From positions 2,852,001 to 2,916,000 of the forward strand of contig JBLDXI010000020.1 of NCBI GenBank assembly GCA_047495785.1: a stretch of DNA of 64,000 nucleotides, given 5' to 3'. The notes under the pieces were generated by a model. It was not told the origin of the DNA. It made no database searches and saw nothing but the letters and a program-made list of their open reading frames with translations. Each line of letters begins with the position of its first letter. Positions within the stretch are counted from its first letter, which is position 1. Both the position numbers and the translations under genes were made by a program. This document shows, one piece after another, positions 316 to 52,600 of the stretch. The DNA comes from Lepidodermella squamata (taxonomy: Eukaryota; Animalia; Gastrotricha).

Positions 316-808
316 GTGAAAAACCTGGCGTTGACAATCTGATACTCTTGATACTCTTCAGATTGTGTCAGAATGTCTGTGCAAGTGTGCATCACAGCGG
401 AAGCTATAGGACCTATCGTGCGGAGATTCTAATTTCAACTAAGATAAAATCTAATTCAATACTGTGCTCTGATATGGATAACTATATACCATTGTCTTTA
501 AGAGTAGGATACCTGTGGGATTAAAAATTTGTTGAAAGGTTCATCGATTTAAATTCAACACGATGTTACTTCCGTGAATGAAATGAAAAATAAAAATAAA
601 TGACTCAACTAGCAGCTCTAGCCGTGAGACCCACAGTAAGTCTCATTGCTCCAGCGATATTCCCGCTGAGCAGCCTGAAGTGACATAGGTGTTTACTTGA
701 CAGGATCCGGATCCAGGAATGAAATTTCAGTTTGCTGACGAAGATCATTTGATGCTGGCAGGCGTCTTCCACGTAGATTTACAATTTGAAGCTCTTTCTT
801 TTGAAAAA

Positions 809-3196
809 ATGAAGATGAAACTTATTCAAACAGTCGCCTTGCTTGCTTTTCTTTGCAGTGCTCAAACTCTCAGCGGTGCTAAGTTGAAGCGATTGAGGAT
901 AATGGTTACATACCCCATAACCGGAGCAATTATCCGAATTGTCGATCGCCTCTATGGCTACAACGTTCTGCTTGACATCGCTAACAATAGGAGTGACATT
1001 CTACCAGGTTATAAGCTCGAGGTCGAATACGGCGATGAGACTGGTAGCGGAAATAATGCTCCCACTGCTGTTATGGGTTGGCTGAGGAAGATGGAGACTA
1101 CAAAGGAGCCTGATCTAAACCCATCTCCTATAACTCTTGCTGCAGCGAACGGCAACGGCTGCAAAGGTTTAGGTGTATTCATTCATCACGTCAATTTAGT
1201 GACGGTCTCAGGAACTTGCACAGCCTCATATCTGGCTGAAAGAAACAGGTACCCCAATTTGTATCTAACCATGCCAGTTGCAGGACTCAGAAACTACGGT
1301 TACGTTCGATTTGTGCGTGAAGTTGGCAGATGGAATCGCTTGGGACTGATAGCCACGCCTGATAGCTCCAATGATTTCAGTGCTGCTCTCTCTTTTCATA
1401 GAATTGCAACCCAACAGGGTACAGAATTCGCATGGCTAGACGCGCCGATAAACTTTGATTTGGAGCGAGCTAATTCCCTGAAACAAAGCGATGCGAGAAT
1501 CATTGTAGCAATGACGTCACAGCGCGCCGTTGTTATACAGTTTCATTGCGTAGCTTATCAAGCTGGCATTACGGGTCCACGGTATATTTTCATAACTTTC
1601 GACAATGCTTTTGCGAATCCTGCAACTCTGACTGACGACGCGATACCGTTTGGTTGCTCACGCTCAATTATCTACAAGCAGCTGAAACAAACCTACTGGA
1701 TGGTCAATTTGGATGGGATGGTCGACCTTACTCAACGAAGTTCTCTCGGTCTGACGAGAGCTGACTTGGACAATCTCATCTGGATGTATAAAAACTCGTC
1801 GATTCCAGGTCCTGATTACGACTCACGACTACCTCATCTTGACGCCATGATGCACATAATTCTGGCGCTGAATAAAACTGAAGCCATGCTCAACGCAGAG
1901 AATCTAACACTTAGTGACTATAAAACGAATGGCAGCCGGATTATGCAGCTAGCGAATCGCTCGGTGCTAACAACTGACTACTTTGGTCTGAGAACTCCAA
2001 GAGTGCGTTACGATTCGAATGGCCAACTGTTCGGGATACCAGGTTTCATCAGCTACTGGACGCCAGAAAAATCATTTGAAAAAGTGGTCCAAATCGATCA
2101 GTTTGAAAACAGTTCCTCGGAATCGTATGATGCGTATTCGATAAAACCACTGGCGCGGATCCTATGGCCGAGTGAAGACGGAAATTCTCCGCGAGATTCC
2201 CGACAAGTCGTCACGGAAATTCTCGAACCAAGTCGAGCTTTTCTGATCGCAGTATCATGTTTCGCAGCGATTATCGCTGCCGCCCAATTAACAAGTCTAA
2301 TTGCATTATTTAAGCAGCGAAACGTAGCACCTCTTTCGTACTCAATGCTTGAAATCAAAATGCTAGGAATCCTGGGCTGTTTGATTCTCGATGCTGCAGC
2401 TATTTTCCATTCATTGAAAACCAGTGATTTTCACTATTTGGGTGGGCTTAGAATAATTTCGGTAGCGGTCGCATTCTCACTTGTTACGCCGGCTGTGTTT
2501 CTGAGACCCGTCTTCCATCTAACGGATGCTAGTACACCCTCTGGTAATCTTACAACCTCGCAAAGAGGTAACGCTCTTAATATTCAACAGAAGAAGAGCA
2601 GTGCACTATTTATTAGTGGCACGTCTAGCATGAAAAGTCCTGGTGCCAGAATGTACGGTCCCCCAGATCTCAACTATTCCCAGCTTGCAAATGAGCAAAA
2701 CTTTCCTAAGAAGAAGCTGAAAGCTTTGAAGATTTTTGCTGGGATATTCACGGTTGTAATCAGCGTTCTAATTGCCTGGCTAACACGTTCCGATCTGAAA
2801 TGTAAGCTGACCCTTGTCCACACTCCAATCTATGACCTGGCAGGGGATACTGAGTATATCACCTATGTTACGTCTTGCACTACGGCAAATCACTCAGCAT
2901 GGTTACTAGCTTTGGTCGCATCTCACCTGCTTCTGGTTGGAATTTCGTGCTTAGCCGCTTTCAAAATGCGGCACAAGCGGGGTCGCGCTGTTGAAAGTAA
3001 CCAAATTACGCTCGCAGTTTGCTTTTTGGCTTCAACCCTTGTGGCTTCAGTCTTATTGCTTGTAATTCTTGGCGACGCGTATCGTCAGCAGCTTGCAGTA
3101 GCTATACTAGCGCTGATAATTTCTGCGGTTATTAGTGTGACTTGGATGATTGGAAATGTAAATAAGTTGACTTCGTCTGGGATATCCAATAGATAG
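809..3196 (+). CDS. GABA-B-like class C GPCR, subtype B copy 1 (signal peptide, Venus flytrap domain, 7TM; intronless)
   Basis: Signal peptide MKMKLIQTVALLAFL; DIANNRSDILPGYKL, RYPNLYLTMP and LKQSDARIIV VFT motifs; WPSEDGNSPRD stalk with no Cys-rich domain; seven hydrophobic segments. ATG 809 is preferred over 719 because the paralog starts there. Confidence 0.85.
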   Translation: MKMKLIQTVALLAFLCSAQTLSGAKLKRLRIMVTYPITGAIIRIVDRLYGYNVLLDIANNRSDILPGYKLEVEYGDETGSGNNAPTAVMGWLRKMETTKEPDLNPSPITLAAANGNGCKGLGVFIHHVNLVTVSGTCTASYLAERNRYPNLYLTMPVAGLRNYGYVRFVREVGRWNRLGLIATPDSSNDFSAALSFHRIATQQGTEFAWLDAPINFDLERANSLKQSDARIIVAMTSQRAVVIQFHCVAYQAGITGPRYIFITFDNAFANPATLTDDAIPFGCSRSIIYKQLKQTYWMVNLDGMVDLTQRSSLGLTRADLDNLIWMYKNSSIPGPDYDSRLPHLDAMMHIILALNKTEAMLNAENLTLSDYKTNGSRIMQLANRSVLTTDYFGLRTPRVRYDSNGQLFGIPGFISYWTPEKSFEKVVQIDQFENSSSESYDAYSIKPLARILWPSEDGNSPRDSRQVVTEILEPSRAFLIAVSCFAAIIAAAQLTSLIALFKQRNVAPLSYSMLEIKMLGILGCLILDAAAIFHSLKTSDFHYLGGLRIISVAVAFSLVTPAVFLRPVFHLTDASTPSGNLTTSQRGNALNIQQKKSSALFISGTSSMKSPGARMYGPPDLNYSQLANEQNFPKKKLKALKIFAGIFTVVISVLIAWLTRSDLKCKLTLVHTPIYDLAGDTEYITYVTSCTTANHSAWLLALVASHLLLVGISCLAAFKMRHKRGRAVESNQITLAVCFLASTLVASVLLLVILGDAYRQQLAVAILALIISAVISVTWMIGNVNKLTSSGISNR

Positions 3197-3674: not shown

Positions 3675-5541
3675 GAGAAAACCTTTTATAGGTATACTGT
3701 GTTATATACAAACTATAACATTGCCTTTGAGACACAGGATTATAAATTATTAAGTTTATAATTTGATGAGATTAATTGATGAATTAATTGCTTGATTGAT
3801 TGATTAGTTAGCGTCTTTGAGTAGGTTGGCTATTTGAGTAAAGATGATTATTCAGGATCCTAATGCTATCCTTAAGGATTTGATGGGCCATATCAACAGC
3901 TGTACTGCTGCTGATTCCGTAATCTTGAAGTAATTGGATCGCTTCTTTGGTTAGCGAGCCCCGTGTGCCGATATAAAGGCCGTGTACTTCTATCGAGTCC
4001 AAATCAAAGGCTTCGCAGATGAACTTGCTACACGGCTCGTAGATCGAACGCTTCTCAATGTCGACATCTCCGAATTGACCTTCTGATGATTCAAATCTAA
4101 TCGTGGGGTCGATGATTGCTCCATGTCTGCTTCCTCTTCGAAATGCCAATATATCAAAACGCCGAGAGGATCCGTTTTCGGCTATACAGTGTCCCTCTTC
4201 AGTGACGTTGTATCCTTGGCGTCGTAGTTCCAAAGCAATCTTCTGGCGGATTTTGTTGTGCCTCGACGTTATCAGCAGCGAGTTAAAGGGGCAGGCGCCC
4301 AGAACGTGTGCTAGGGATTCAATCTCAGCGCCGCATCGGCGGCACTGGCGTCCGTCCTGGCTGACACCCGGTACACCTCTAACTGGAGCCGTGTTAGTCG
4401 ACATTTTCAAAGCCATCGTCCATTCCGCAACACTAAGTCCATTTCTTCGCAGTACCCAGTTGTTTGTTTTCGGTACGCATTTAAACTGTGAAACTCCTCT
4501 TCCTTTTTGATCAAGGTTACACCATGATTGGAATTCCTTCATTCGTAGGCCGTTTCGAATCATTTTTACATTGGGCGGTAGAATCCTTTCAGTGTCTTCT
4601 GTGTAATTTCCTTCCGAGTCACCATCCGAGCCTTCATTCAAATCAGTTTCTGTTAAGTCAACTCCGACTCTAGCGAGACAGTCTGCCATTTCCGATTCAA
4701 GGTCCCTACATGCAAGTACAAGTGGCTCGCCGTTGATCAACAGCTTTCTGCAGATATTGTAAATTTGTAAATATGCTTCCCAGGACGCTTTTGGTAAACC
4801 GAGACCGCGGTGTTTCCGGGCAGAATAAAAGAAACTTGAAGGCGTGCTGGTTGGAAGTCCAATGAATTCTTTAACCACACTTCGCAAAATTGTATCGACA
4901 GAATCAAGGAACGTTTTCCTTATAGCTTTTGCAGGAGCGGTTTGAAAAGGATATATTAGTTTAGGCCATATAAATTGGGTCAATATAGTCAGTTTCTGGT
5001 CGGCGTGAAGAAGATTTGACTTTGCCAACAGTTCGAGCTGGTCTTTGAGTTCTGAGATAACAGCCCCCTCGTCAAAAACTATTTCATCTTTGAACGTGAC
5101 ACCCAAATATTTTATAGTTTCTTCTTCATCGATGGCAGGTATCAAGTCTCCATTGCTCAATATCAACGGCTCTGAATTAAGAACGCCATCTTCAACAATT
5201 ATGGCGACACACTTTTTGACATTGACCTCCAAACCAATCTGCGAAAACAAATTTCTTGCCATGTCAACGAGGTATGCAGCCGATTCGCGGCTGTTTCCGA
5301 TAGGGGTTGTGTCATCGGCAAATCCAAGAACCGATACATTCGGTAGATCAGACGACAATTTGAAGCCATAAGCGTCAGCAACTTCACGTTCGGATAATTC
5401 ACGAAGGACATAATCAATGCAGAGATTAAATATCGTAGGTGATATCGGCGACCCTTGCATCACTCCGCGTTCAAACGTTATTTTAGATGTCCTGAGTCCG
5501 TTTGCTTTGATATGAGTCCGTTTCATATTGAAAAATGGCAA
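3675..5541 (-). mobile_element. 5'-truncated non-LTR retrotransposon with restriction-like endonuclease (R2/NeSL/R4-type superfamily); ORF 3808-5541
   Basis: RT motifs RGVMQGSPISP, FADD and YLG; CCHC knuckle CRRC..HVLGAC; RHN; RRFD..IIDPTIRFE..EKRSIY. The 3' end is defined by identity with the copy at 44064-45131. Confidence 0.9.
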
Positions 5542-7695: not shown

Positions 7696-8121
7696 CTGAA
7701 AAACCTGGCGAGGAAAATTTGATACTCGCCGTGTTCAGATTGTTTCAGATTGCTCGCAAGACGCAAGAAACTATTGAACCTTACCGTGCAGAGAGTGTAA
7801 TTTCAACTCGAATGATCCTAAATAGAATATTCAATTGTCCATAACATAGTTGTTTACCTGTGTGGGATGAACAATTTGTTGAAGTTTTCATCGATTAAAA
7901 CTCAACACGATGTTACCTCTACGAATAAAATGAAAAATAGCAATAAATGACTGAACTAGCAGCTTTAACGATATTCTCGCTGAGCCGCTTGAAGACACCT
8001 GGGTGTTTACTAGACAGGATACGGATCCAGGGGTGAAATTTCAGTATGCTGACAAGAATCATTTGATGCTGGCAGGAATCATCACTGTAGATTTTCCCTT
8101 TCAAGCTCATTCTAGCGAAAA

Positions 8122-11100
8122 ATGAAGATGAAATTTGTTAACGCCGTCGCCTTGCTTGCTTTTCTTTGCAATGCTCAGATTATCAGCGGTGCCAAGCTGA
8201 AGCGATTGAGGATAATGGTTACATACCCCATAACCGGAGCAATCATCCGAATGGTCGATCGCCTCACTGGATTCAATATCCTGCTTGACATCGCCAATAA
8301 CAGGAGTGACATTTTACCGGATTATAAACTCGAGGTCGAATACGGCGATGAGTCTGCAGGTGGTAATAATGCCCCAGCTGCTGTCATGGGTTGGCTGAGG
8401 AAGATGGAGACAACAAAGGAGCCTGATCTCAGCCCATCTCCTATAACGCTTGCTGCAGCGAACAGCAATGGCTGTAAAGGTATAGGTGCATTCATACATC
8501 ACGTCAATCTAGTGACGGTCTCAGGAACCTGCACAGCCTCTTATTTAGCTGAAAGAAGCAGATACCCTAATTTGTACCTAACCATGCCAGTTGCAGGACC
8601 GAAACAGTACGGCTACGTTCGATTTGTACGTGATATTGGTAAATGGAGTCGCTTGGGACTAGTAGCCACGCCTGATAGCTCTAATGATTTCAACACTGCT
8701 ATCTTTTTCCATAAAATAGCAACTCAGCAGGGTGTAGTATTTGCGTGGTTCGACGCGCCCATTAAGTTTGATTTGGAGCGAGCTAATTCCCTAAAACAAA
8801 GCGATGCGAGAATCATTGTAGTGATGTCGTCACAGCGCGCCGTTTTTATACAGTTTCAATGCGTGACCTATCACGCTGGCATTACGGGTCCACGATATAT
8901 TTTCATAACTTTTGACAATGCCATTGCAAATCCTACTTCAATACCTGACGACGCAATACCTTTTGGGTGCTCGCGCTCAATTATCTCCCAGCAGATGAAA
9001 CAAACCTACTGGACACTAGTAAAAATAAGTTATTAGCTAGCAGGGCTAGCTAGCCGCTAGCTAGCTCACTGTTTCAGCACTATGTATAAGGTGGGATATC
9101 TAGCGCGCAATGAAAAGTTGCTAGCTAACGGATCAAGTTGCTAAATAGCGCAACGCTTAGACGCGAATATTGACAAGCTGCTATAGAGAGCTACCTAGCA
9201 GGTTATTTCGTAATCTAGCTGCTAGCTAGCATATGATCGTGCCTCAATGCGCTATCTAGCAGGACCTGAAATTCAAATACTTCCCGCCAACCGCCATTTT
9301 GGATTTTCACCTGCTAGCTAGCCCAAAAATTCAAATTTTTAAGCTAGCTAGCCCAAATATTTGAATTTTCAAGCTAGCTAGCGCACATCTCTCGCACAGC
9401 AGAACTTGAATGCCTTGACATTGTTACATTTTCTCATTTCAACAAGTCAACTTAAACTTAGAGCATCAGAACTCCGGCTAGGTATTGCGGTTACTTTCTC
9501 TGTTTTCCCGCCCGTTTTCATACGAATTAATGTATCGATATTTGTATTTTTTAGATCATAGCTACGATAAAAGTTTAACATCAAACGCGACGCGGCCAGC
9601 AGCCAAGGATCGCTCTATGAACTGGTTTTTACATCGCTTTCATCTTTTATTTCAGTAACAAAGTAAGTAACAGTTATTTGATAATTGCTGAAATATAATT
9701 TTCTTGCCTGTTTTTAGTTCTTGCAACAAGCTGTTTGATCCTATGCAATATCAATAGATGCGCTATACTAGCCGCGGTGGCTGTTCAAATTCTAATACTG
9801 CTGCCTAACTGCTCTCGTCGACTATCGTTATCTTCGGCCATTTAGTATTTTTGTTATTGCTTCTATGTCATGTTAACGATCGTTCTCGAGTGCTATGTTA
9901 TGCTTCTGAAATTACCAAGTTGTTTTTTTGCGCTAATGACAAATGAATACATGCTATCTAATAAAAAAGAAGGTTCAAAAATTGACTTGACTGTAATTAA
10001 CTCAAATTACGAGAAAACCAGGAAGGAGAGGATAGCGGGATGGCTAGCTAGCCATGAAAGTTATAAAACTAGCCAGTCCTGCCCTATTTAGCACCCAGTG
10101 CTATATAGTGGGATGGCTAATATAGCAGCCTGCTAGGCAACGAAGCTGCTACATAGCGCGCCTTGTTACTATTATCTAGCAACTTTCTACATAGAACATC
10201 GTGCGCTAGTTAGGGGGGCACCAGGCTTATATATAACGGGTTACTAGCTAGCAAGTGAAGTTTCTAGCTAGCGCAAGACGCTAAAACTAACTAGCAGCTT
10301 ATTTTTACTAGTGGATGGTAGATTTAGATGGGATGGTCGACCTAACACAAAAAAGTTCTTTTGGTCTGAATAGAGCAGAATTGGACAATCTCATCTGGAG
10401 GTATAAAAACTCCTCGATTCCGGGTCCTGATTACGACTCACGACTACCTCACCTTGATGCGATGATGCACATAATTCTGGCGCTGAACAAAACTGAAGTC
10501 ATGCTCAACTTAGAGAATCTAACACTTAGTGACTATAAAACGAATGGCAGCCGGACTATGCAGCTAGCGAATCGCTCGGTGCTAACAACTGAATACTTCG
10601 GCCTGAGAACTCCAAGAGTGCGATACGATTCGAATGGCCAACTGTTCGGCATACCAGGTTTCATCAGCTACTGGACGCCAGAAAAATCATTCGAAAAAGT
10701 GGTTCAAATCAATCAGTATGAGAACAGTTCCTCGGAATCCTATGATGCGTATTCAATAAAACCACTGGCGCGGATCCTTTGGCCGAGTGAAGACGGAAGT
10801 TCTCCGCGAGATTCCCGACAAGTCGTCACGGAAATTCTCGAACCAAGTCGAGCTTTTTTAATCGCAATATCTTGTTTCGCAGCGATTATCGCTGCCGCCC
10901 AATTAACAAGTCTAATTGCATTATTTAAGCAGCGAAACGTAGCACCTCTTTCGTACTCAATGTTTGAAATCAAAATGCTTGGAATTCTGGGTTGTTTGAT
11001 TCTCGATGTCGCAGCTATCTTCCATTCATTGAAAAGCAGTGATTGCTACTTTTTGGGCGTGCTAAGAATTATTTCGGTAGCGGTCGCATTCTCACTGGTT

Positions 11101-11823
11101 ACGCCGGCTGTGTTTCTGAGGCCCATCTTCCATCTAACGGATGCTAGTCCCGTCTCTGGTAATCTTTTAACCTCACAAAGAAGTAGCGCTTTTATGCAGC
11201 CCAAAAGGAGCAGTACACAATTTATCAGTGGTACGAAGTCGAGCATGAAAAGTCAATCCATTCCTGGTGGCGGAATGTACGGTCCCCCAGAGCTTAACTA
11301 TGCCCAGCTTGCGGATGAGCAAAATTTCGCAAAGAAGAAGCTGAATGCTTTGAAAATCTTTGCCGGATTATTCACGACTGTAAACAGCGTTCTAATTGCC
11401 TGGCTGACAAGTTCCGATTTAAAATGTAAGCTAATCCTTGTCCAAGCTCCATTATATGACCCGGCAATGGATACTGAGTATAACAGCTTTGTTACATCTT
11501 GCATTACGGCAAATATTTCAGCATGGTTACTTGCTTTAGTTGCTCTACACCTAATACTAGTCGCAATATCGTGTTTAGCCGCCTTCAAAATGCGACACAA
11601 GCGAGGTCGCGCCGTAGAGAGTAACCAAATTACTCTTGCAGTTTGCTTCTTGGCTTCAACCTTGGTAGCTTCAGTCTTATTGCTTGTCATTCTTGGCGAC
11701 GCGTATCGTCAGCAGCTTGCAGTAGCTATACTAGCGCTGATAATTTCTGCAGTTATTAGTGTGACTTGGATGATTGGAAATGTAAATAAGTTGACTTCCT
11801 CTGGGTTATCCAATAGATTATAG
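8122..11823 (+). CDS. GABA-B-like class C GPCR, subtype B copy 2, interrupted by a CACTA insertion (possibly spliced as join 8122-9018, 10312-11823)
   Basis: ORFs 8122-9036 and 10315-11823 are the two uninterrupted halves of a paralog of 809-3196; the junction is QTYW|MVDLDG. Confidence 0.8.
9014..10313. mobile_element. Non-autonomous CACTA/EnSpm-like DNA transposon, 1300 bp
   Basis: Perfect 16-bp TIR CACTAGTAAAAATAAG; 2-bp TSD GA (9012-9013, 10314-10315); many CTAGCTAG subterminal repeats; the empty site is seen in paralogs. Confidence 0.9.
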
Positions 11824-11851
11824 TCAAAAGGTATATAATATAGGTTTATTC

Positions 11852-13439
11852 ATGGTTAATAAACGGTCTATTCAGAATGCCGATGTGCGCACAGGCCAGC
11901 TGGAGTCATCAGGGAGAAAATTCGTGGAAGTATCTTTTAGGCACAAGAAAAAAGCATCTGGTGCCGAAAGAGGCGCGCCGAAACGCGGCTTCCAAACACG
12001 GCGATTATATGAAACCGACGGCGAGTTTTCGCCTTACAAGGTAGTGATGGCGTACCGCGCAAGAAAAACGCAAACTCAGAACCATGCTTCTGGTGCATAT
12101 TACCTCACCCCCAATATCGGGCGATGGGCCTGGACGCCCGGAACCAAGCGGCGCTGGTTTAAAAAGTCGCGACTTGGCAAAAATAGTCAAGACTCTTTAC
12201 TGAAAAGCATGTTGAAAAAGTTCGCTCCGCAATTTGCTCACCACTACACCAACTATTCTTTGAGAAAATATACCGTCGACCGATTGTGCGCTTCATTACG
12301 AATTCCACCCCACATCATCGCTTTACACATTTCCCACGATAACGCTGGGACGTCGATTAACCCTTACGTAAGCATTAGCTTGGAGATGCAGCTTCTTCTT
12401 CAAGAGTTGGTAATGTCAGAATTTGAGGCTGCTCTCGACGACGATGGTGACGATGGTGATGATTCGGAGAACAGCGATGAAGCAGAAATCTGCAATGATT
12501 CCGCCGCCGCTGAACCCGCAAAAAAGAAATCCAAAACGCTATCGAGCGAAACAGTAAGCGAAGAAGAAGAAGAAGTACATGATGATGCTGATGCTGAGGC
12601 TGAGGCTGATGCTGAGGCTGAGGCTGATGCTGAGGCTGAGGCTGATGCTGAGGCTGAGGCTGAGGCTGAGGCTGAGGCTGAGGCTGAGGCTGAGGCTGAG
12701 GCTGAGGCTGAGGCTGATGATGACGATGATGACGATGCTGATGCTGGTGATACTGTTCATGTACGTAACGCTGCCAGGTCTCAAATTTCGAGCTCGACGA
12801 AAGATAGCGTGATTGAGTCGAATGCAGGTTGTTTAGTCTCCCGTGTTTTTTTTGAATTATAACCTGTTTAATTAAAGATGAGTCGATTGGCGAATCTTTG
12901 CCGCCAACGCTTGGTGTTGAACGTAATTCAGTTGTCCGCAGTAATGCAGGTTCGATCGAACTACCGGGAAATCGAGATATCCCACGTCGTGAATCTCCAT
13001 CGGTCAGTAACGTCGAAAACTCGCCTGCAGAAAAGCAATTACGACGCCGGAATGCCGCCAGCTCAATAACTTCCAGCAGTGGCCATGCTAGCATTGATGG
13101 TGGTTGGCTTGTTTTTGAACAATCTCGTATATATTCAAGTCTAGGATTGTTTTAGATTCTTCAACGCCCCCGGTCATTGCTTCTGAAAGTAATGAGCATG
13201 CCGATAGCGTTGAACGCAGGGCAGTTGGTGCTGATCGTGATCGACTTCCAAGTTCAATAAAGGCAGAAATAGTCGTAGAGGTCGACAACGACGACGACGA
13301 CTGTTTTATTGTTGAGCCTGCAGTAAAGAAGGAGCCTTTCTCCGCCAGCGTTGGCCGGATAGTAAACGCTATCCGGTCAACGAGTGGTAATAAGAATATT
13401 ACCATAAACTTGAATTTCCACAACTGCACCTTTCATTGA
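11852..13439 (+). CDS. Partial Crypton-type tyrosine recombinase (DUF3504-like) with acidic tail; probably two short introns near 12.83-12.93 kb and 13.10-13.16 kb
   Basis: ORF 11852-12862 plus downstream exon-like segments ending in NLNFHNCTFH*. Confidence 0.55.
12582..12745 (+). repeat. (GCTGAG)n/(GCTGAT)n microsatellite encoding an Ala-Glu/Asp run
   Basis: Directly visible tandem hexamer. Confidence 0.95.
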
Positions 13440-17420: not shown

Positions 17421-17852
17421 CCAACAAAAATTGTTCACGTACAATTACTATTGTGTATTCGCCGCGATTATGCCACACATCATTGCGACCTGTTTCTCGC
17501 GCTGAATCTCATTTCGACTCACAAAATTCAGTGATGCCACAGACATAGATACCTTGATATTTAATTATTTCTAAAAGAATTATATCCCAGAGTTATAAAT
17601 AACTTGTTATGAAGTTCGCCGATCAAGAGCATTCTGCAAGCATATGTCTTGCATCTTGCATGTATTACGCCAGTGAAACTGATGCAAAAATATCAGCTCT
17701 ATGGATAATTTTCGCTAATAAGTGGATAAATTAGGAATTATGGAAAATTTCGCGACAGGATCCAGGGGGTGTGAAATTTCAGTTTACGTCCTCACGCTGG
17801 CGTTCAATCATCGTCGTATATCTGCAAATTTCAGGCTCGTCACATCGCAATA

Positions 17853-20282
17853 ATGGGGGTAAAAATTATTTTGAACTTCACTATTTTCGCTTTCCTCTTT
17901 GTTTCCTCTCAATTGATCAGCGGTGCCAAGTTGAAGCGATTGAGGATATTGGTTACATATCCCATAACTGGAACAGCTGTCCGCATTGTCGATCGCCTAA
18001 TTGGATACAACATTCTACTTGATATCGCCAATAACAGGAGCGATATCCTACCAGACTATAAACTCGAGGTCGAATACGGCGATGAGTCTGCAGGTGGAAA
18101 TAACGCTCCGACTGCTGTTATGGGTTGGCTGAGGATGATGGAAACTTCAAAGGAGCCCGATCTCAGCCCAGCGCCTATAACTCTAGCGGCTGCGAACAGC
18201 AATGGCTGTAAAGGTATTGGTGCATTCATTCATCACGTCAATCTAGTGACGGTCTCAGGAACCTGCACAGCCTCATATCTAGCTGAAAGAAACAGATACC
18301 CTAATTTGTATCTAACCATGCCAGTTGCAGGACCGAAAAACTACGGTTATGTTCGATTTGTGCGTGAGGTTGGCAAATGGGGCCGTTTAGGACTAGTAGC
18401 CCCGCCAGATAACTCCAATGACTTCAATGCTGCTATCTCTTTCCATAGAATTGCAACTCAACAGGGTATAGAATTCGCATGGTTTGACGCGCCGATAAAG
18501 TTTGATTTGGAGCGAGCTAATTCCCTAAAACAAAGCGATGCTCGAATCATTGTAGCAATGACGTCATCACGCGCCGTTGCTCTAACGTATCATTGCATGG
18601 CCTATCAAGCCGGAATCACAGGTTCCAGGTATCTGTTCATAATTTTCGACAATGCTTTTGCGAATCCTGCAACTTTGACGGACGACGCGATACCCTTCGG
18701 TTGTTCGCGCTCAATGCTCTACGAGCAAATCAAACAAACCTACTGGATGGTAGATTTGGATGGGATGGTCGACCTAACCCAAAGAAGTTCTTTTGGTCTG
18801 AATAGAGCCGAATTAGACAACCTCATTTGGAGGTACAAAAACTCGTCGATTCCAGGTCCTGATTACGACTCACGACTACCTCACCTTGATGCCATGATGC
18901 ATATAATTCTGGCGCTAAATAAGACTGAAGCAATGCTTAACGCGGAGAATCTAACGCTTAGCGACTATAAAACGAATGGCAGCCGGATTATGCAGCTAGC
19001 GAATCGCTCGGTGTTAACAACTGACTACTTTGGTCTGAGAACGCCAAGAGTGCGTTACGATTCGAATGGACAACTCTTCGGCTTGCCGGGTTTCATCAGC
19101 TACTGGACACCGGAAAAATCATTCGAAAAGGTGTTCCAAATCGATCAGTTTGAAAACAGTTCCTCGGAATCGTATGATGCGTATTCTATAAAATCGCTGG
19201 CGCGAATTCAATGGCCGAGCGAAGACGGAAATCCGCCGCGGGATTCTCGACGGCTGGTCACGGAAATTCTCGAGCCAAGTCGAGCTTTTCTGATCGCAGT
19301 ATCTTGTTTTGCAGCGATTATCGCTGTCATCCAAGTAACAGGCCTAATTGCAGTATTTATTCAGCGAAAAGTAATACCGCTTTCTTACTCAATGTTTGAA
19401 ATCAAAATGCTAGGAATTGTCGGCTGTTTGATTCTCGATGCTGCTGCTATTTTCCATTCAATGAAAAGCAACGATTGTCACTATTTGGGTGCGCTAAGAA
19501 TAATTTCGGTAGCGGTCACATTCTCACTGGTTACGCCGGCTGTGTTTCTGAGACCCATTTTCCATCTAACAGATGCTAATAGCTTTGCCCCGAGGTTTTC
19601 CACCGGCAATCCTGCAACCCAACGAAGAAGCAGTGCGTTTAATTTGCAACATCGGAGAAGCAGCACGCTAATTACCAATGGTCCAAGGTCGAGCATTCTA
19701 AGCCTGTCGCTACCTGGAGGCGGAATGTATGGTCTCTCAGAAAATACTCTCGACTATGCCCAGCTAGCAGATGAGCAAAATTTCCCTAGGAAAAAGTCCG
19801 CAGCTCTGAAAACTTTTGCCGGCATATTCACAGCTCTAAACAGTGTTCTAATAGCCTGGTTTACATGTTCTGATTTAAAATGTAAGCTGACCCTTATCCG
19901 TACTCCAATCTATGACCTGGCAGGGGATACGGAGTATAGCACCTCTGTTACTTCTTGCACTACGGCAAATCACACAGCATGGTTACTTGCTTTGGTCGCC
20001 TCACACCTGATTCTGGTCGCAATATCGTGCCTAGCCGCCTTCAAAATGCGACACAAGCGAGCTCGTGCTGTAGAAAGTAACCAAATTGCCATTGCAGTTT
20101 CCTTTCTGGCCTCAACCCTGGTGGCTGCAATCTTATTACTTGTTATTCTTGGCGACGCGTATCGTCAACAACTTACAGTTGCTATCCTTGCCCTGATAAT
20201 ATCTGCAGTTATGAGTATGACTTGGATGATTGGAAATGTAAAGAAGTTGACCTCCTCTGTTGGGCCATCTAATAGAATATAG
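17853..20282 (+). CDS. GABA-B-like class C GPCR, subtype B copy 3
   Basis: 809-aa intact ORF, close paralog of 809-3196. Confidence 0.88.
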   Translation: MGVKIILNFTIFAFLFVSSQLISGAKLKRLRILVTYPITGTAVRIVDRLIGYNILLDIANNRSDILPDYKLEVEYGDESAGGNNAPTAVMGWLRMMETSKEPDLSPAPITLAAANSNGCKGIGAFIHHVNLVTVSGTCTASYLAERNRYPNLYLTMPVAGPKNYGYVRFVREVGKWGRLGLVAPPDNSNDFNAAISFHRIATQQGIEFAWFDAPIKFDLERANSLKQSDARIIVAMTSSRAVALTYHCMAYQAGITGSRYLFIIFDNAFANPATLTDDAIPFGCSRSMLYEQIKQTYWMVDLDGMVDLTQRSSFGLNRAELDNLIWRYKNSSIPGPDYDSRLPHLDAMMHIILALNKTEAMLNAENLTLSDYKTNGSRIMQLANRSVLTTDYFGLRTPRVRYDSNGQLFGLPGFISYWTPEKSFEKVFQIDQFENSSSESYDAYSIKSLARIQWPSEDGNPPRDSRRLVTEILEPSRAFLIAVSCFAAIIAVIQVTGLIAVFIQRKVIPLSYSMFEIKMLGIVGCLILDAAAIFHSMKSNDCHYLGALRIISVAVTFSLVTPAVFLRPIFHLTDANSFAPRFSTGNPATQRRSSAFNLQHRRSSTLITNGPRSSILSLSLPGGGMYGLSENTLDYAQLADEQNFPRKKSAALKTFAGIFTALNSVLIAWFTCSDLKCKLTLIRTPIYDLAGDTEYSTSVTSCTTANHTAWLLALVASHLILVAISCLAAFKMRHKRARAVESNQIAIAVSFLASTLVAAILLLVILGDAYRQQLTVAILALIISAVMSMTWMIGNVKKLTSSVGPSNRI

Positions 20283-46619: not shown

Positions 46620-49600
46620 ATGATTAATCCACTAGAGCAACAAAACTCGCAAGAGACGCCATGCGAAATTTGCACCAAGCCAACCTTCAGCATACGCTGC
46701 GGGGTGTTTGCCTGTGAAGCTTGCAAGGTAACCATATCATATAATATTTATGGTTTATGGATGGTGAACATCTGTAACGATTAGTTATTGTTTTGATATT
46801 GTTGTTCATGTTTGTTTGGCATTTGGCCATTGTACTATCAGCTCATTCATAACTTGGCTTCTATTGCGTTTCCCTCATTAGTCATAGCTGTGGCCTATAA
46901 TAAGGCGTAGATGTATCATTTTCAGTATTCTGGTTATTTTCAATGAATAAATCAAGCATCTCGGGAAACGTTGACTCTTCATGACAAAATAACCAGAATC
47001 CAAACTTTTTTTCGAAACTTCGTATCTTTCGTATCAAATTTTTTTTGAACCATGAATGTCGAGGATCAACTCACCGAACTCATTGCGCGTTTCAATGGTC
47101 TTGAAATCTCAGTTAATGAATTGCAGACCGGGCTTCAAGCAGTTGGCAATCGGCCTGTTTTCGAGCCGAAAAGAGGCGGGACCCCGAAACCATTCAAAGG
47201 CGACCGCAAAGAATTCAGAACGTTCTGGAGCCAGTGTATTCTTTATTTAGGCATGAATGCTTCAATTTACTCGACCGATCCGCTTCGCGTTGGCTTTGTC
47301 ATTTCTCTTCTTCAAGACAGCGCCGGAAAATGGGCCGCTCCTTTGTTGGAAACAAATCATGCTTTGCTGACAAATTTTCAAAATTTCGGTAACGCCCTCG
47401 CTGCTGTTTTCGACGACCCTTCCCGACAAATTGCAGCTGAAAACGCACTCGATGTACTCAGGCAAGGAAATCGTACTGTTGCTGAATTCACTTCGGAGTT
47501 CACGTTGTTTCAAGTCGATGTTCCTTACAACGAAGCAGCCCTTATTCATATTTATCGTCGAGGTCTCTCGCAGGAAATCCGTGATCATTTAACTCACTAC
47601 CCGTTACCTACAACACTGGCCGAATTAATTAAGACAGCTACTCAAATCGACCGCCGTTTGGCTGAACGCCAGGCAGAAAAGCAATTTGAAACTCATCATT
47701 ACCAAGCCTCGAGTAACTTGCCAAGCAATTATCAAGTATCATACGCAGCGGGAACTAATGCTGCTGGTGCTAATGGTCACATGGCAATGGAAGTTGGCCG
47801 AGTGGCGCGTGCGCCCATTGATGGCTTTGAACGCGAACGTCGTCGTCGCCTTGGCCTGTGCTTTTATTGCGGTTCGGCTGGTCATCTTGTTGCTCGCTGC
47901 CCTACGACCTCTTCGAACCGCGCGAACCGGGTTAACCGTGATTTTCCGAATTACTCTAATGCTAAGTCAAACTCTAATAAACAAGGAGATAATTACACTG
48001 ATGAGCTTTTTATTTTACAAGGTATGGTCATCGAGCCGCTCACTGATCGTGGCGCTTTCGCCGTTGTTTTGGTGGATTGCGGTGCAGAGGGCAACTTCAT
48101 GGATGCGAGATTCGCTCGGCAGCGTGGCATTTCGTTGGTTCCTAAGCGTGCACCTGTCCGTTTGGAAGGCATGGATGGTCGGATGCTGGGTTCTAGCCCG
48201 ACAACTCTCGAAACCGTTCCTCTCCTGCTTGAGTTAGCTGGCCACAAAGAATTAATTAGGTTCGATATTATGGAGAGCCCGCACTATCCCGTTATTCTAG
48301 GAATGCCCTGGTTGAAGCAGCACAATCCGAGCATTGATTGGGCGAATAACACGATTCATTACTCCTCTCGTTACTGCGCTGATCACTGTCATGCCGAAGG
48401 TCAAGAAAACTCGTCTACTGGCCGCGTACTACTGGGCGGAGTTCGTCAAGATAAATCGAATGCTAAGCCAAGTACGGTCCTGCCTGAGAAGTACCGCGAG
48501 TTTGCCGATGTGTTTGACGAGAAAGAAGCTGACAAATTACCGCCGCATCGCCCTTACGACTGTCAAATCGATCTGGAGCCAGGAAAAAGCCCGCCGTTTG
48601 GTCCGATTTACAGCTTATCCGAAACTGAACTCGAAGTTCTGCGAAAGTATTTGAAAGAAAATTTGGCAAAAGGCTTCATTCGTGCTTCAAAATCATCCGC
48701 TTCTTCGCCAATAATGTTTGTCAAGAAAAAAGACGGCACCCTAAGACCAGTTGTCGACTACCGCGGGTTGAACAAGGTCACTAAGAAGGCGCGGTACCCC
48801 TTGCCATTGATACCGGAACTCATCGATCGCATTGGAAAAGCCAAGGTCTTCACTCGCCTGGACCTCAAAAATGCGTACAATCTACTTCGAATTCGAGAAG
48901 GTGACGAGTGGAAATCCGCCTTCCGTTCAAGATATGGCCTCTTCGAATATTTGGTCATGCCATTCGGCCTGTCTAATGCCCCAGCAGCATTTCAGCACTT
49001 CATGAACGATTTGTTTCGCGACATGCTAGATTCTTTTGTAGTAATTTATTTGGATGATATTTTGATCTTTTCGAATAGCCTGGACGAACACGAAGGTCAC
49101 GTTCGCCAAGTCCTTCAACGACTGCGTGAAAACCGACTTTTTGCCAAGTTAACGAAATGCGAATTCGAGGTAACAAAAGTTGATTTCCTAGGTTTCGTTG
49201 TCGGCACCGATGGTATTTCAATGTCGCCCGAGAAAGTCGAAGCCATCCGTGATTGGAAAAGCCCGACTACCTTCAAGGAAGTTCAGACCTTTCTAGGTTT
49301 CGCCAATTTCTACCGTCGTTTCATCAACGATTTCGCCAAGGTTGCCAAGCCACTGAATCAACTCATGAAGAAGGATATCAAGTCTTTCGTATGGGACGAC
49401 CGTGCTGAACGAGCCTTCTGCGAATTGAAGAAGCGGTTCACTTCAGCTCCGGTACTGGTCCACCCCGACCCGGATAAGCCATTTGTTGTTGAAACTGATG
49501 CCTCGAATTTTGCTGTGGGTTGTATTTTGTCACAGGTTGCTTCGGATGGCTTACTTCACCCGTGTGCTTACTACTCGAGAAGTCTAACGTCGGCTGAACA

Positions 49601-52600
49601 AGGCTACGGCATCTACGACAAAGAACTGCTGGCTGTCAAGGTCGCGTTCGAAAATTGGCGCCACTATCTCGAAGGGGCGCGGCACCGTGTTACGGTTCTA
49701 ACTGATCATCGGAACTTGGAATTTTTCGAGTCCAAGGTCAAGATCCTCAATCAACGTCATGCGCGATGGGCTCAGTTCTTTTCCCGCTTCGATTTCGTTC
49801 TAAGCTATCGCCCTGGTTCAGAAGCCGGTGACGCCGACGCCTTGTCGCGAAAACCTCAGCTTCAATTGCCAGGTACACAGTCGATCGAGCCTCAGTTTGT
49901 ATTGCAGCCAGCAAATCTTCGCATACTGGCCACTCGCTCATTCGTCTATGCCGAAGACCCCCTGGTCGATCGAATTCGTGCAGCGCAAACCAAGGACAAC
50001 TTCGCTATCGCCGCCCGCAACCGTCTCGCTGGTAAACCGGCCTCAATGAACATTGACCGAACACGTCTCAGCGAAGCCAACGGTGTTCTACTTTATGAAA
50101 ATCTCATTTACGTTCCGGCTGAATTGCGTCTCGAGATTCTCGATTCTCGACATGATTGCAAACTGGCTGGTCACCCTGGTATTAACAAAACGATCGAGCT
50201 GATATCACGCGATTATTGGTGGCCGGGTCAAGCAGCGTTCATCAAAGCGTACGTTCGTTCCTGCGAAACTTGCCGCCGTGTGAAATCAAGCCGGCACGAA
50301 CCCTATGGACTTCTTCAACCGCTACCGACGCCTTCGCGGCCATGGTCATCGATATCGATGGATTTCATCACTGACCTGCCGCCTTCACAGGGTAAGACAT
50401 GTATTCTGAATGTTGTTGATCGCCTGACTAAAATGGCTCATTTTATTGCATTTCCTGGTTTACCGACCGCCGAGCAAACGGCCCAAGCTGTCCTGGACCA
50501 GGTGTTTCGACTTCACGGTTTGGCCGACGACGCCGTCAGCGATCGTGGCTCTCAATTTTCATCTCATTTTTGGAAACGATTTCTCGAATTACTCAATTGC
50601 CAAGTCAAATTGTCGACTGCATTTCACCCGGAAACTGACGGTCAAACGGAACGGGTTAATCAGCAGTTGGAACAATATTTACGATGCTTCACTTCTTATC
50701 AACAAGATGACTGGTACGAACTCTTACCACTCGCCGAATTCGCCTACAACAACACTTCGCATTCTTCAATCAACACTTCGCCATTTTTCGCAAATTACGG
50801 GTTTCATCCGCGATTCGACATTTCAACGCCGTCTTCTTCACAAGTACCCCGAGCCGAGTTCCGTGCAAAAAATCTGGCTGATGTTTCTCGAGTTCTAGTC
50901 AATCATTTGGATAACGCGAAAGCTCGATACAAAAATTTTGCCGATCGTCATCGCCAGGAAGCGCCATTGGTCAAAGTCGGCGACAAAGTTTGGCTCAATT
51001 CAAGAAATCTTACTACGACGAGGCCGTCAAAGAAGTTGGATTACAAGAAAATCGGACCTTTCGTTGTCAAAAGCCTGGTTGGTCAATCAGCTGTTCGGCT
51101 TTCTCTTCCGCATTCTCTTCGCATTCACCCCGTTGTACATGTCTCTTTGATCGAACCTTATGTTGCTAATGAAATCAAGAATCGGATTCAGCCGCCACCT
51201 CCAGCTGTTACAATCAACGGTGAACAAGAGTTTGAAGTTCGCGCAATTTTGGATTCCAAACTCGAGCGAGGTCGCGTCAAGTACCTCGTTGACTGGTGTG
51301 GCTACGGCCCAGAAGACCGCACTTGGGAACCGCCTGGAAATTTGTCTCATTCGGCTGATTCAGTTGCTGATTTTCACCGACGTTATCCTGAGAAGCCGGC
51401 GCCTCGAAAGCCGTAAGGAGGGTGTGGTGTAACGATTAGTTATTGTTTTGATATTGTTGTTCATGTTTGTTTGGCATTTGGCCATTGTACTATCAGCTCA
51501 TTCATAACTTGGCTTCTATTGCGTTTCCCTCATTAGTCATAGCTGCGGCCTATAATAAGGCGTAGATGTATCATTTTCAGTATTCTGGTTATTTTCAATG
51601 AATAAATCAAGCATCTCGGGAAACGTTGACTCTTCATGACAACATCTCTTTTCCAGAAATTCTTCTTGAGGAATCGCCGGCTGTTGAAAGACTCCATACC
51701 TTGTAAAACCGGAACGAACAACTGTGACGTCATATACCTACGGGGATTCCCAGCCTGTTCGAAATGCCGATTGGCGAAATGTTATGCTGTAGGAATGAGA
51801 GTGAAAAGTATGTGTACCCGATATGATTGTTTTCAAACCGATGACTGCTCCATTGTTTTTATCAGGAGAAAATCGAAGTACTACCAAAGACCGAGCTAAG
51901 CTTGAGCTTGAAATTAAGATGGAACCAGTTCAAATATCTCACGATCCACCTGATTTGTTAGCTATCAATGCCGAGATGATGCTTCAGTCATCAGTCATCG
52001 CGCAAGCATCATTGGCAGATCTTCAAAACGTGAGAATTTCGTTTTTTTCCGTTATGTATTGCTATTGCCTTGACTTGAATTTAAAGTTGCCAGTGTCACA
52101 TTCAAGTGAAGTGCTCCCCCTCGATTGCAGCAGGGTAGTTTGGCAGCGAGGCATGGACAATTTTACGCAGATATCCAGAATTTGCACATCTTTCGTAAAG
52201 AAACTGCCATGTTTGCTTTCGTAAAGAAAAATACTTGTAGCATAACTTCGTATCTGATTTGTCTAGGTTATTCAGATATACCTGTATCAGATCGCTGTCA
52301 GTTATTCGGAAAATCGATATTCCCGATCACCGTATCTCAATTGTGCACTTATGGGAAGCCGTTGTGGGGCATGAACGAGATCAATCGTTGCGAGCTTATG
52401 CGCCATTTTCCGATTTTTCACGTATAATAAATGCGAATTTAGTCTGTTTCGCCAATTTATTTTTATGATCTAAAAGGTATCTGCTTCTCAAATCGACGAT
52501 GTCGATCGAGCAATTCAATTGTGGCAACCTTCGCCAGCCGAACTAGCTCTACTTCAAGCTCTGTTTTTCTATTGTGGTAGTGAATCATCATAAATTACCG

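Follow-up and report, generated by a model that had tools for sequence, protein, structure and literature searches.

Work by Wessler and colleagues in the late 1980s on the maize Ds and dSpm alleles wx-m9, bz-m13 and adh1 reportedly revealed that an element lodged in an exon can be partly or wholly spliced out of the transcript. The elements there are defective ones of CACTA or hAT type whose terminal splice sites give leaky alleles with few extra codons. The element described here is alike in offering a GT and an AG at its ends, but in maize cDNA showed the splicing, at sites that were often several and imprecise, whereas ours is known from genomic sequence alone. Transposon-derived introns with terminal inverted repeats (TIRs) and target site duplications (TSDs) are also well documented (PMC9860276, PMC11282704). 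Introners, described from Micromonas, Aureococcus, dinoflagellates and some animals (PMC9860276, PMC12130899, PMC11282704), are, like our element, non-autonomous DNA transposons with TIRs and TSDs that lie in coding sequence and whose ends supply GT and AG; they differ in forming many similar copies that are the spliced introns of many genes, whereas our element has one genic copy, a poor donor and a length of 1.3 kb. Among animals, introns made by transposons are very rare: Gozashti et al. (2022) recorded introners in just two groups. Even splicing of the element would add a further case or variation to a kind already recognised, since introners and the leaky splicing of Ds and dSpm are on record. 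We know of no introner-like intron makers in Gastrotricha, or in the class-C GPCR family concerned here.

The second point of comparison is provided by the CACTA/CMC elements of animals, which have 5'-CAC...GTG-3' ends and a 2-bp TSD (PMC6004678) and belong to a wider CMC-Transib clade with CA..TG ends and TSDs of 2-5 bp (PMC12730594). ENS1_Cis of Ciona savignyi and the CMC-NA MITEs (PMC6004678) resemble our element in their CAC...GTG ends, 2-bp TSD, short TIRs and lack of coding capacity. Compared with a typical MITE, however, the element is bigger (1.3 kb), has long subterminal GCTAGC arrays and is present in very few copies, and no transposase partner with matching TIRs was found for it in the assembly.

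The window analysed is a stretch of 64,000 nucleotides from a gastrotrich genome (C20:2852001-2916000), and positions given without a contig are positions in it. Positions 9014-10313 hold a non-autonomous DNA transposon of 1300 bp that has CAC...GTG ends and TIRs matching perfectly over 16 bp, and its insertion point lies inside the ligand-binding domain of an intronless gene, about 806 codons long, for a class-C GPCR. We consider it most likely, at a probability of roughly 0.78, that this is a young insertion of the CMC kind which has left one redundant tandem receptor gene as a null or truncated allele and has created no new intron. The features of the gene, its empty counterparts and the element are as follows.

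8122-9013, forward strand: 5' half of the host gene, signal region and most of ANF_receptor (Pfam, E 5.5e-10)
10316-11823, forward strand: 3' half of the host gene, end of the ligand-binding domain and 7tm_3 (Pfam, E 1.2e-11)
1690-1709, forward strand: empty counterpart of the insertion point in gene 719-3196, the closest paralog, single GA at 1699-1700
18739-18763, forward strand: empty homologous site in the second paralog (gene 17853-20282), single GA at 18746-18747
9012-9013, no strand: left copy of the target site duplication, GA, single at the paralogs' empty sites
10314-10315, no strand: right copy of the target site duplication, GA, likewise single at the empty sites
9014-9029, forward strand: 5' terminal inverted repeat, CACTAGTAAAAATAAG, holding the proposed donor GT at 9019-9020
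10298-10313, forward strand: 3' terminal inverted repeat, CTTATTTTTACTAGTG, exact reverse complement of CACTAGTAAAAATAAG, holding the proposed acceptor AG at 10310-10311
9034-9036, forward strand: in-frame stop TAG, reached if the mRNA keeps the element
9036-9386, no strand: 5' subterminal array of GCTAGC(TAGC), 30-bp repeats included (motif count)
10043-10272, no strand: 3' subterminal array of GCTAGC(TAGC) (motif count)

The host is one of six intronless class-C GPCR genes in 30 kb (719-30296), the others lying at 719, 17853, 20566, 23008 and 27906, the last two on the reverse strand. In the five intact paralogs the ANF_receptor and 7tm_3 matches occur together, and in the host they are split between its two halves. 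The cluster encodes ANF_receptor plus 7tm_3 proteins of about 785-825 aa, which fall into two subfamilies at only 26% mutual identity. Acceptor-like sites (tttcaag, ctcattctag, aatttcag) stand 6-20 nt before GPCR start codons (8062-8121 and 17793-17852), an arrangement that would be consistent with spliced-leader trans-splicing. Elsewhere in the window, an apparently intact Ty3/gypsy gag-pol ORF of 1454 aa occupies 47052-51416 on the forward strand and encodes protease, RT, RNase H, integrase and a chromodomain at the C terminus; another RT fragment, separate from it, is found at 3808-5541 on the reverse strand.

The host gene is 82-89% identical in nucleotides to its two closest paralogs. Against the closest, gene 719-3196, its 5' half aligns at 86% identity up to exactly paralog base 982, and its 3' half at 89% from paralog base 983 on. 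Both paralogs read AAACCTACTGGATGGT at the insertion point and align gaplessly over it, from which it follows that the element was inserted precisely with duplication of 2 bp of target. A search of the assembly for an empty allele turned up only the paralog site. The 5' half reads into the element as far as the TAG (ORF 8122-9036, 304 aa), and the 3' ORF, 10315-11823, is in the same frame and has an in-frame ATG at 10315, 3 nt after the AG.

Beyond the perfect repeats, the inverted arms of the element reach 39 nt at 77% identity. The internal repeats prove to be subterminal motif arrays: all 18 GCTAGC motifs lie within 9036-9377 and 10043-10267, that is, in the subterminal 350 bp and 230 bp, whereas over the rest of the window the motif occurs at 0.18 per kb. 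The 5' array probably comprises predicted transposase-binding sites. The coding capacity of 9014-10313 is slight, with no ORF longer than 73 aa, and an Rfam scan of 8000-12000 gave no match.

Copies were sought throughout the genome (121 Mb in 151 contigs). The family is small, with two near-identical copies, two diverged complete relatives and five solo 5' ends, or about four complete copies in all. The complete copies other than the one in the window are these.

C60:421770-423066: sister copy, 1297 bp, 99% identical, TSD CG
C30:357177-364760: 7.6-kb relative, TSD TA
C30: 700-bp relative, TSD TA

The CAC...GTG ends of the CACTAGTAAAAATAAG type recur in the C60 and C30 copies. A 2-bp TSD is present at all four complete copies (GA, CG, TA and TA), far above the chance expectation of about (1/16)^4. 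A search with the terminal 12-mer for extra members gave 27 matches, against 125 for a reversed control, and thus no enrichment beyond the set found with the 16-mer. Relative to 9014-10313 the sister copy has 14 substitutions and lacks 3 nt at one place, a difference of 1.1% overall; it is nested in a Ty3/gypsy pol gene, with protease on one side and RT on the other, and a G>T change in its right repeat destroys its own AG. The size of the 7.6-kb relative is due to a satellite in its interior, made up of 51 units of 51 bp that are 99% identical. This satellite is open on both strands, and it produces spurious long ORFs and spurious Pfam matches (LbH_EIF2B, ImpA_N). Neither of the C30 relatives lies in a clear reading frame, and the only copy in a host gene is the one at 9014-10313; on the enrichment in exons that the first-pass annotation had proposed to look for, the four or so complete copies, one of them in a host gene and its sister in a Ty3/gypsy pol gene, show no bias to genes.

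The best assignment of the element is CMC/CACTA-like, on the strength of short TIRs with CAC...GTG ends, a 2-bp TSD (CMC elements have 2-4 bp, and animal CACTA/Mirage 2 bp) and subterminal repeated motifs; since no autonomous element was found, the superfamily would be given by the ends and the TSD alone. The description of the locus as a CACTA-type transposon inserted into the coding part of a gene from an intronless family is thereby upheld in its TIRs, CAC...GTG ends, 2-bp TSD and subterminal repeats. No Pfam transposase, and so no CMC-type DDE transposase with matching TIRs, was present in the 7.6-kb relative, and the ORFs of the DNA adjoining solo ends on C13, C42, C43 and C54 contained none either; that DNA holds ordinary host genes, namely a peptidase M4 fragment, an ankyrin protein, temptin, a Cu monooxygenase and ANF_receptor genes. 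Two ORFs of 578 and 495 aa with Transposase_21 matches, of CACTA/EnSpm type (Pfam 36.8 bits), occur at C42:58506-58910 (reverse strand) and C42:1366028-1366432 (forward strand). They are a possible source of the mobilising transposase; none of the 12-mer TIR matches lies near them, and they could not be linked to the element. Two other identities were considered and rejected: a Transib-like parse with a TSD of 4 or 5 bp fails at the C60 and C30 copies, and Tc1/mariner is ruled out by TSDs other than TA at two of the four complete copies.

The course of events that we favor is as follows. A non-autonomous cut-and-paste element of the CMC (CACTA/Mirage/Chapaev) group, presumably mobilised in trans by a transposase that is encoded elsewhere or has since been lost, would have entered the ligand-binding-domain coding sequence of one of the tandem intronless class-C GPCR genes, duplicating GA. 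In doing so it would have brought in a stop that the reading frame meets after seven codons, 21 nt from the left end of the element, and the outcome would be a nascent pseudogene or a polymorphic insertion. The loss of one receptor gene should be cheap, as at least five intact paralogs lie within 30 kb. So understood, the locus would be nothing unusual, a young insertion inactivating one chemoreceptor-like gene out of many in tandem, and it would put on record, in a gastrotrich genome, a small and recently active CMC/CACTA-like family with 2-bp TSDs.

That both halves of the gene are still open had been taken as a sign that the element functions as an intron. The observation itself stands (ORFs 8122-9036 and 10315-11823), but the significance attached to it does not, since open frames are to be expected of an insertion only 1.1% removed from its sister copy: about 12 neutral changes at most would have accumulated in the 2.4-kb gene since insertion, and we estimate the odds that both frames survived by chance at roughly 1 in 3 or better. 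Lineage-specific changes, polarized with gene 17853 as outgroup, number 78 synonymous and 60 nonsynonymous in the host gene and 58 and 49 in its closest paralog. The two genes have been under similar purifying selection through most of their history, and the host branch shows no excess of nonsynonymous change, a point against a null allele; the insertion is, however, too young for this comparison to discriminate, and for the same reason it says nothing about the time after insertion.

What gave the locus its interest is the arithmetic of its ends. The first-pass annotation had placed a donor GT at 9019, an acceptor AG at 10310-10311, a branch-point-like ACTAAC at 10286-10291 and a stop at 9036, and all of these are where it put them. 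The signals that matter for splicing, besides those in the repeats, are the following.

10286-10291, forward strand: branch-point-like ACTAAC, 20 nt upstream of the AG
9202-9203, forward strand: internal donor-like CAG/GTTATT, 7.8 bits (PWM scan)
9663, forward strand: internal donor-like AAA/GTAAGT (PWM scan)
9091, forward strand: internal donor-like AAG/GTGGGA (PWM scan)

A T-rich pyrimidine run is present as well, and the interval from GT to AG, 9019-10311, is 1293 nt, or 3 x 431. If it were excised, nine nucleotides would stay behind, five from the left repeat, two from the right one and two from the second GA, and they would add Thr-Leu-Trp between ...KQTYW and MVDLDG..., with the host halves in one frame; the earlier statement that the frame is restored with three extra residues is therefore correct as arithmetic. 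It is equally true, as had been pointed out, that the same sum holds in either orientation and any phase, since each strand presents the same 16 bases at its end, and that it follows from the palindrome ACTAGT. Yet the arithmetic alone is weak evidence of design, since by our estimate roughly one in eight random 16-nt repeats would offer some in-frame GT/CT pair. Transposition would then dictate the sequence of the repeat, and the in-frame GT...AG would be incidental to the palindrome within it.

To judge the strength of the signals we compared them with 17 distinct introns from the same genome, which were verified by aligning intronless tubulin and HSP70 copies to intron-bearing paralogs. (De novo discovery of introns by ORF continuity yielded noise without a donor consensus and was discarded.) Most of the verified introns measure 50-60 nt and all fall within 50-488 nt, so the candidate is well above their range. 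A G at -1 or at +5 is needed by donors in animals generally. In the verified set G(-1) is found in 14/17 donors, G(+5) also in 14/17, and one or the other in all 17, whereas the proposed donor, CTA/GTAAAA, has neither. On a small matrix built from these 17 introns of two gene families, scores of 5.0-12.0 bits are obtained for the verified donors (2.3-11.4 on leave-one-out scoring) and the proposed donor scores -2.5 bits, which places it at rank 57 of the 95 GTs between 8122 and 10311; by the same matrix the proposed acceptor, at 0.4 bits, falls in the lower portion of the verified range. The internal sites at 9202, 9663 and 9091 score 5.1-7.8 bits, and splicing from any one of them would leave the stop at 9034 in the mRNA. 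The two repeats with their flanks could also pair in RNA, at -37.6 kcal/mol, which would bury both splice sites and might help or hinder splicing. It seems likely that the element is not spliced out with any efficiency.

Of the other fates that such an insertion might meet, an unlikely one, in our view, is that it has divided the gene into two expressed parts or gives rise to aberrant mRNAs. Cryptic splicing in cis might join the donor at 9202 or 9663 to 10311, and these two donors score 6.9-7.8 bits. Alternatively, a spliced leader might be joined in trans at acceptor 10311, just 3 nt upstream of an in-frame ATG, in a setting (ACTAG/TGGATG) that resembles the acceptor-then-ATG layout before the intact paralogs; the products would be an N-terminally truncated receptor of 502 aa and a soluble fragment of 304 aa. 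Both routes, however, are read purely from sequence and depend on an acceptor of only 0.4 bits, and a class-C receptor deprived of its signal peptide and the greater part of its ligand-binding domain would probably fail to insert properly into the membrane.

The proposal that the spliceosome removes 9019-10311 and leaves Thr-Leu-Trp behind, so that the receptor remains functional and an intronless family has gained an intron, in any phase or orientation, appears very unlikely. It has in its favor the placement of GT and AG, a length divisible by three, the T-rich tract and the ACTAAC, together with the two open halves of the gene; in addition, the distant paralogs differ in length by three residues five residues past the insertion site, and an inserted TLW might on that account be tolerated. 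Against it stand a donor with neither G(-1) nor G(+5) where all 17 verified donors have at least one of them, stronger internal donors that would compete and retain the stop, a length well beyond the verified range, the burial of both splice sites in the potential repeat duplex, and a tiny family without bias to genes, while youth accounts for the open frames. Transcripts or proteins of the host gene were, moreover, not found in the collections searched: word-index protein searches, run separately with the 502 aa of exon 2 and the final 135 aa of exon 1, retrieved nothing, not so much as a paralog; exact-product look-ups of both host halves were likewise empty; and the 20-mer leading up to the insertion site had, in a metagenome scan, a single unrelated chance match of 21 nt. 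Taken together, the sequence evidence argues against the birth of an intron at 9014-10313, and precise splicing of the element has perhaps a slim chance of being correct. Were it to occur, a single fresh in-frame case whose paralogs keep the empty site would offer a clean snapshot of intron birth.

Slim, too, is the chance that the palindromic ends are a built-in escape device, as the term self-mitigating, applied to the element when it was first described, would imply. Splicing at CACTA/GT...AG/TG would leave nine bases in any exon and in either orientation, and the element would be an introner-like intron maker seen at its first genic insertion. The poor donor, the better donors within, the unusual length and the small family with no preference for genes all tell against this idea as they do against splicing itself.

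It is barely conceivable that the insertion is an artefact of assembly or amplification. In favor of this are the chimeric reads that occur in HiFi data from multiple-displacement-amplified DNA (PMC11660948), the probable source of the assembly, and the fact that no empty allele is found in it; against it, a chimera would not yield a precise 2-bp target duplication at the exact ends of the TIRs, and the 14 substitutions and one 3-base indel that separate the element from the C60 copy show that it is not a misplaced read of the latter.

Contig C42 also preserves a trace of recent change in DNA that contains the family. Two identical truncated copies of the element, at C42:2122108 and C42:2132462, lie 10,354 bp apart and have a common flank, which points to a segmental duplication, of recent date and some 10 kb in size, with ANF_receptor genes inside it; further class-C GPCR genes of the type found in the cluster adjoin these truncated copies.
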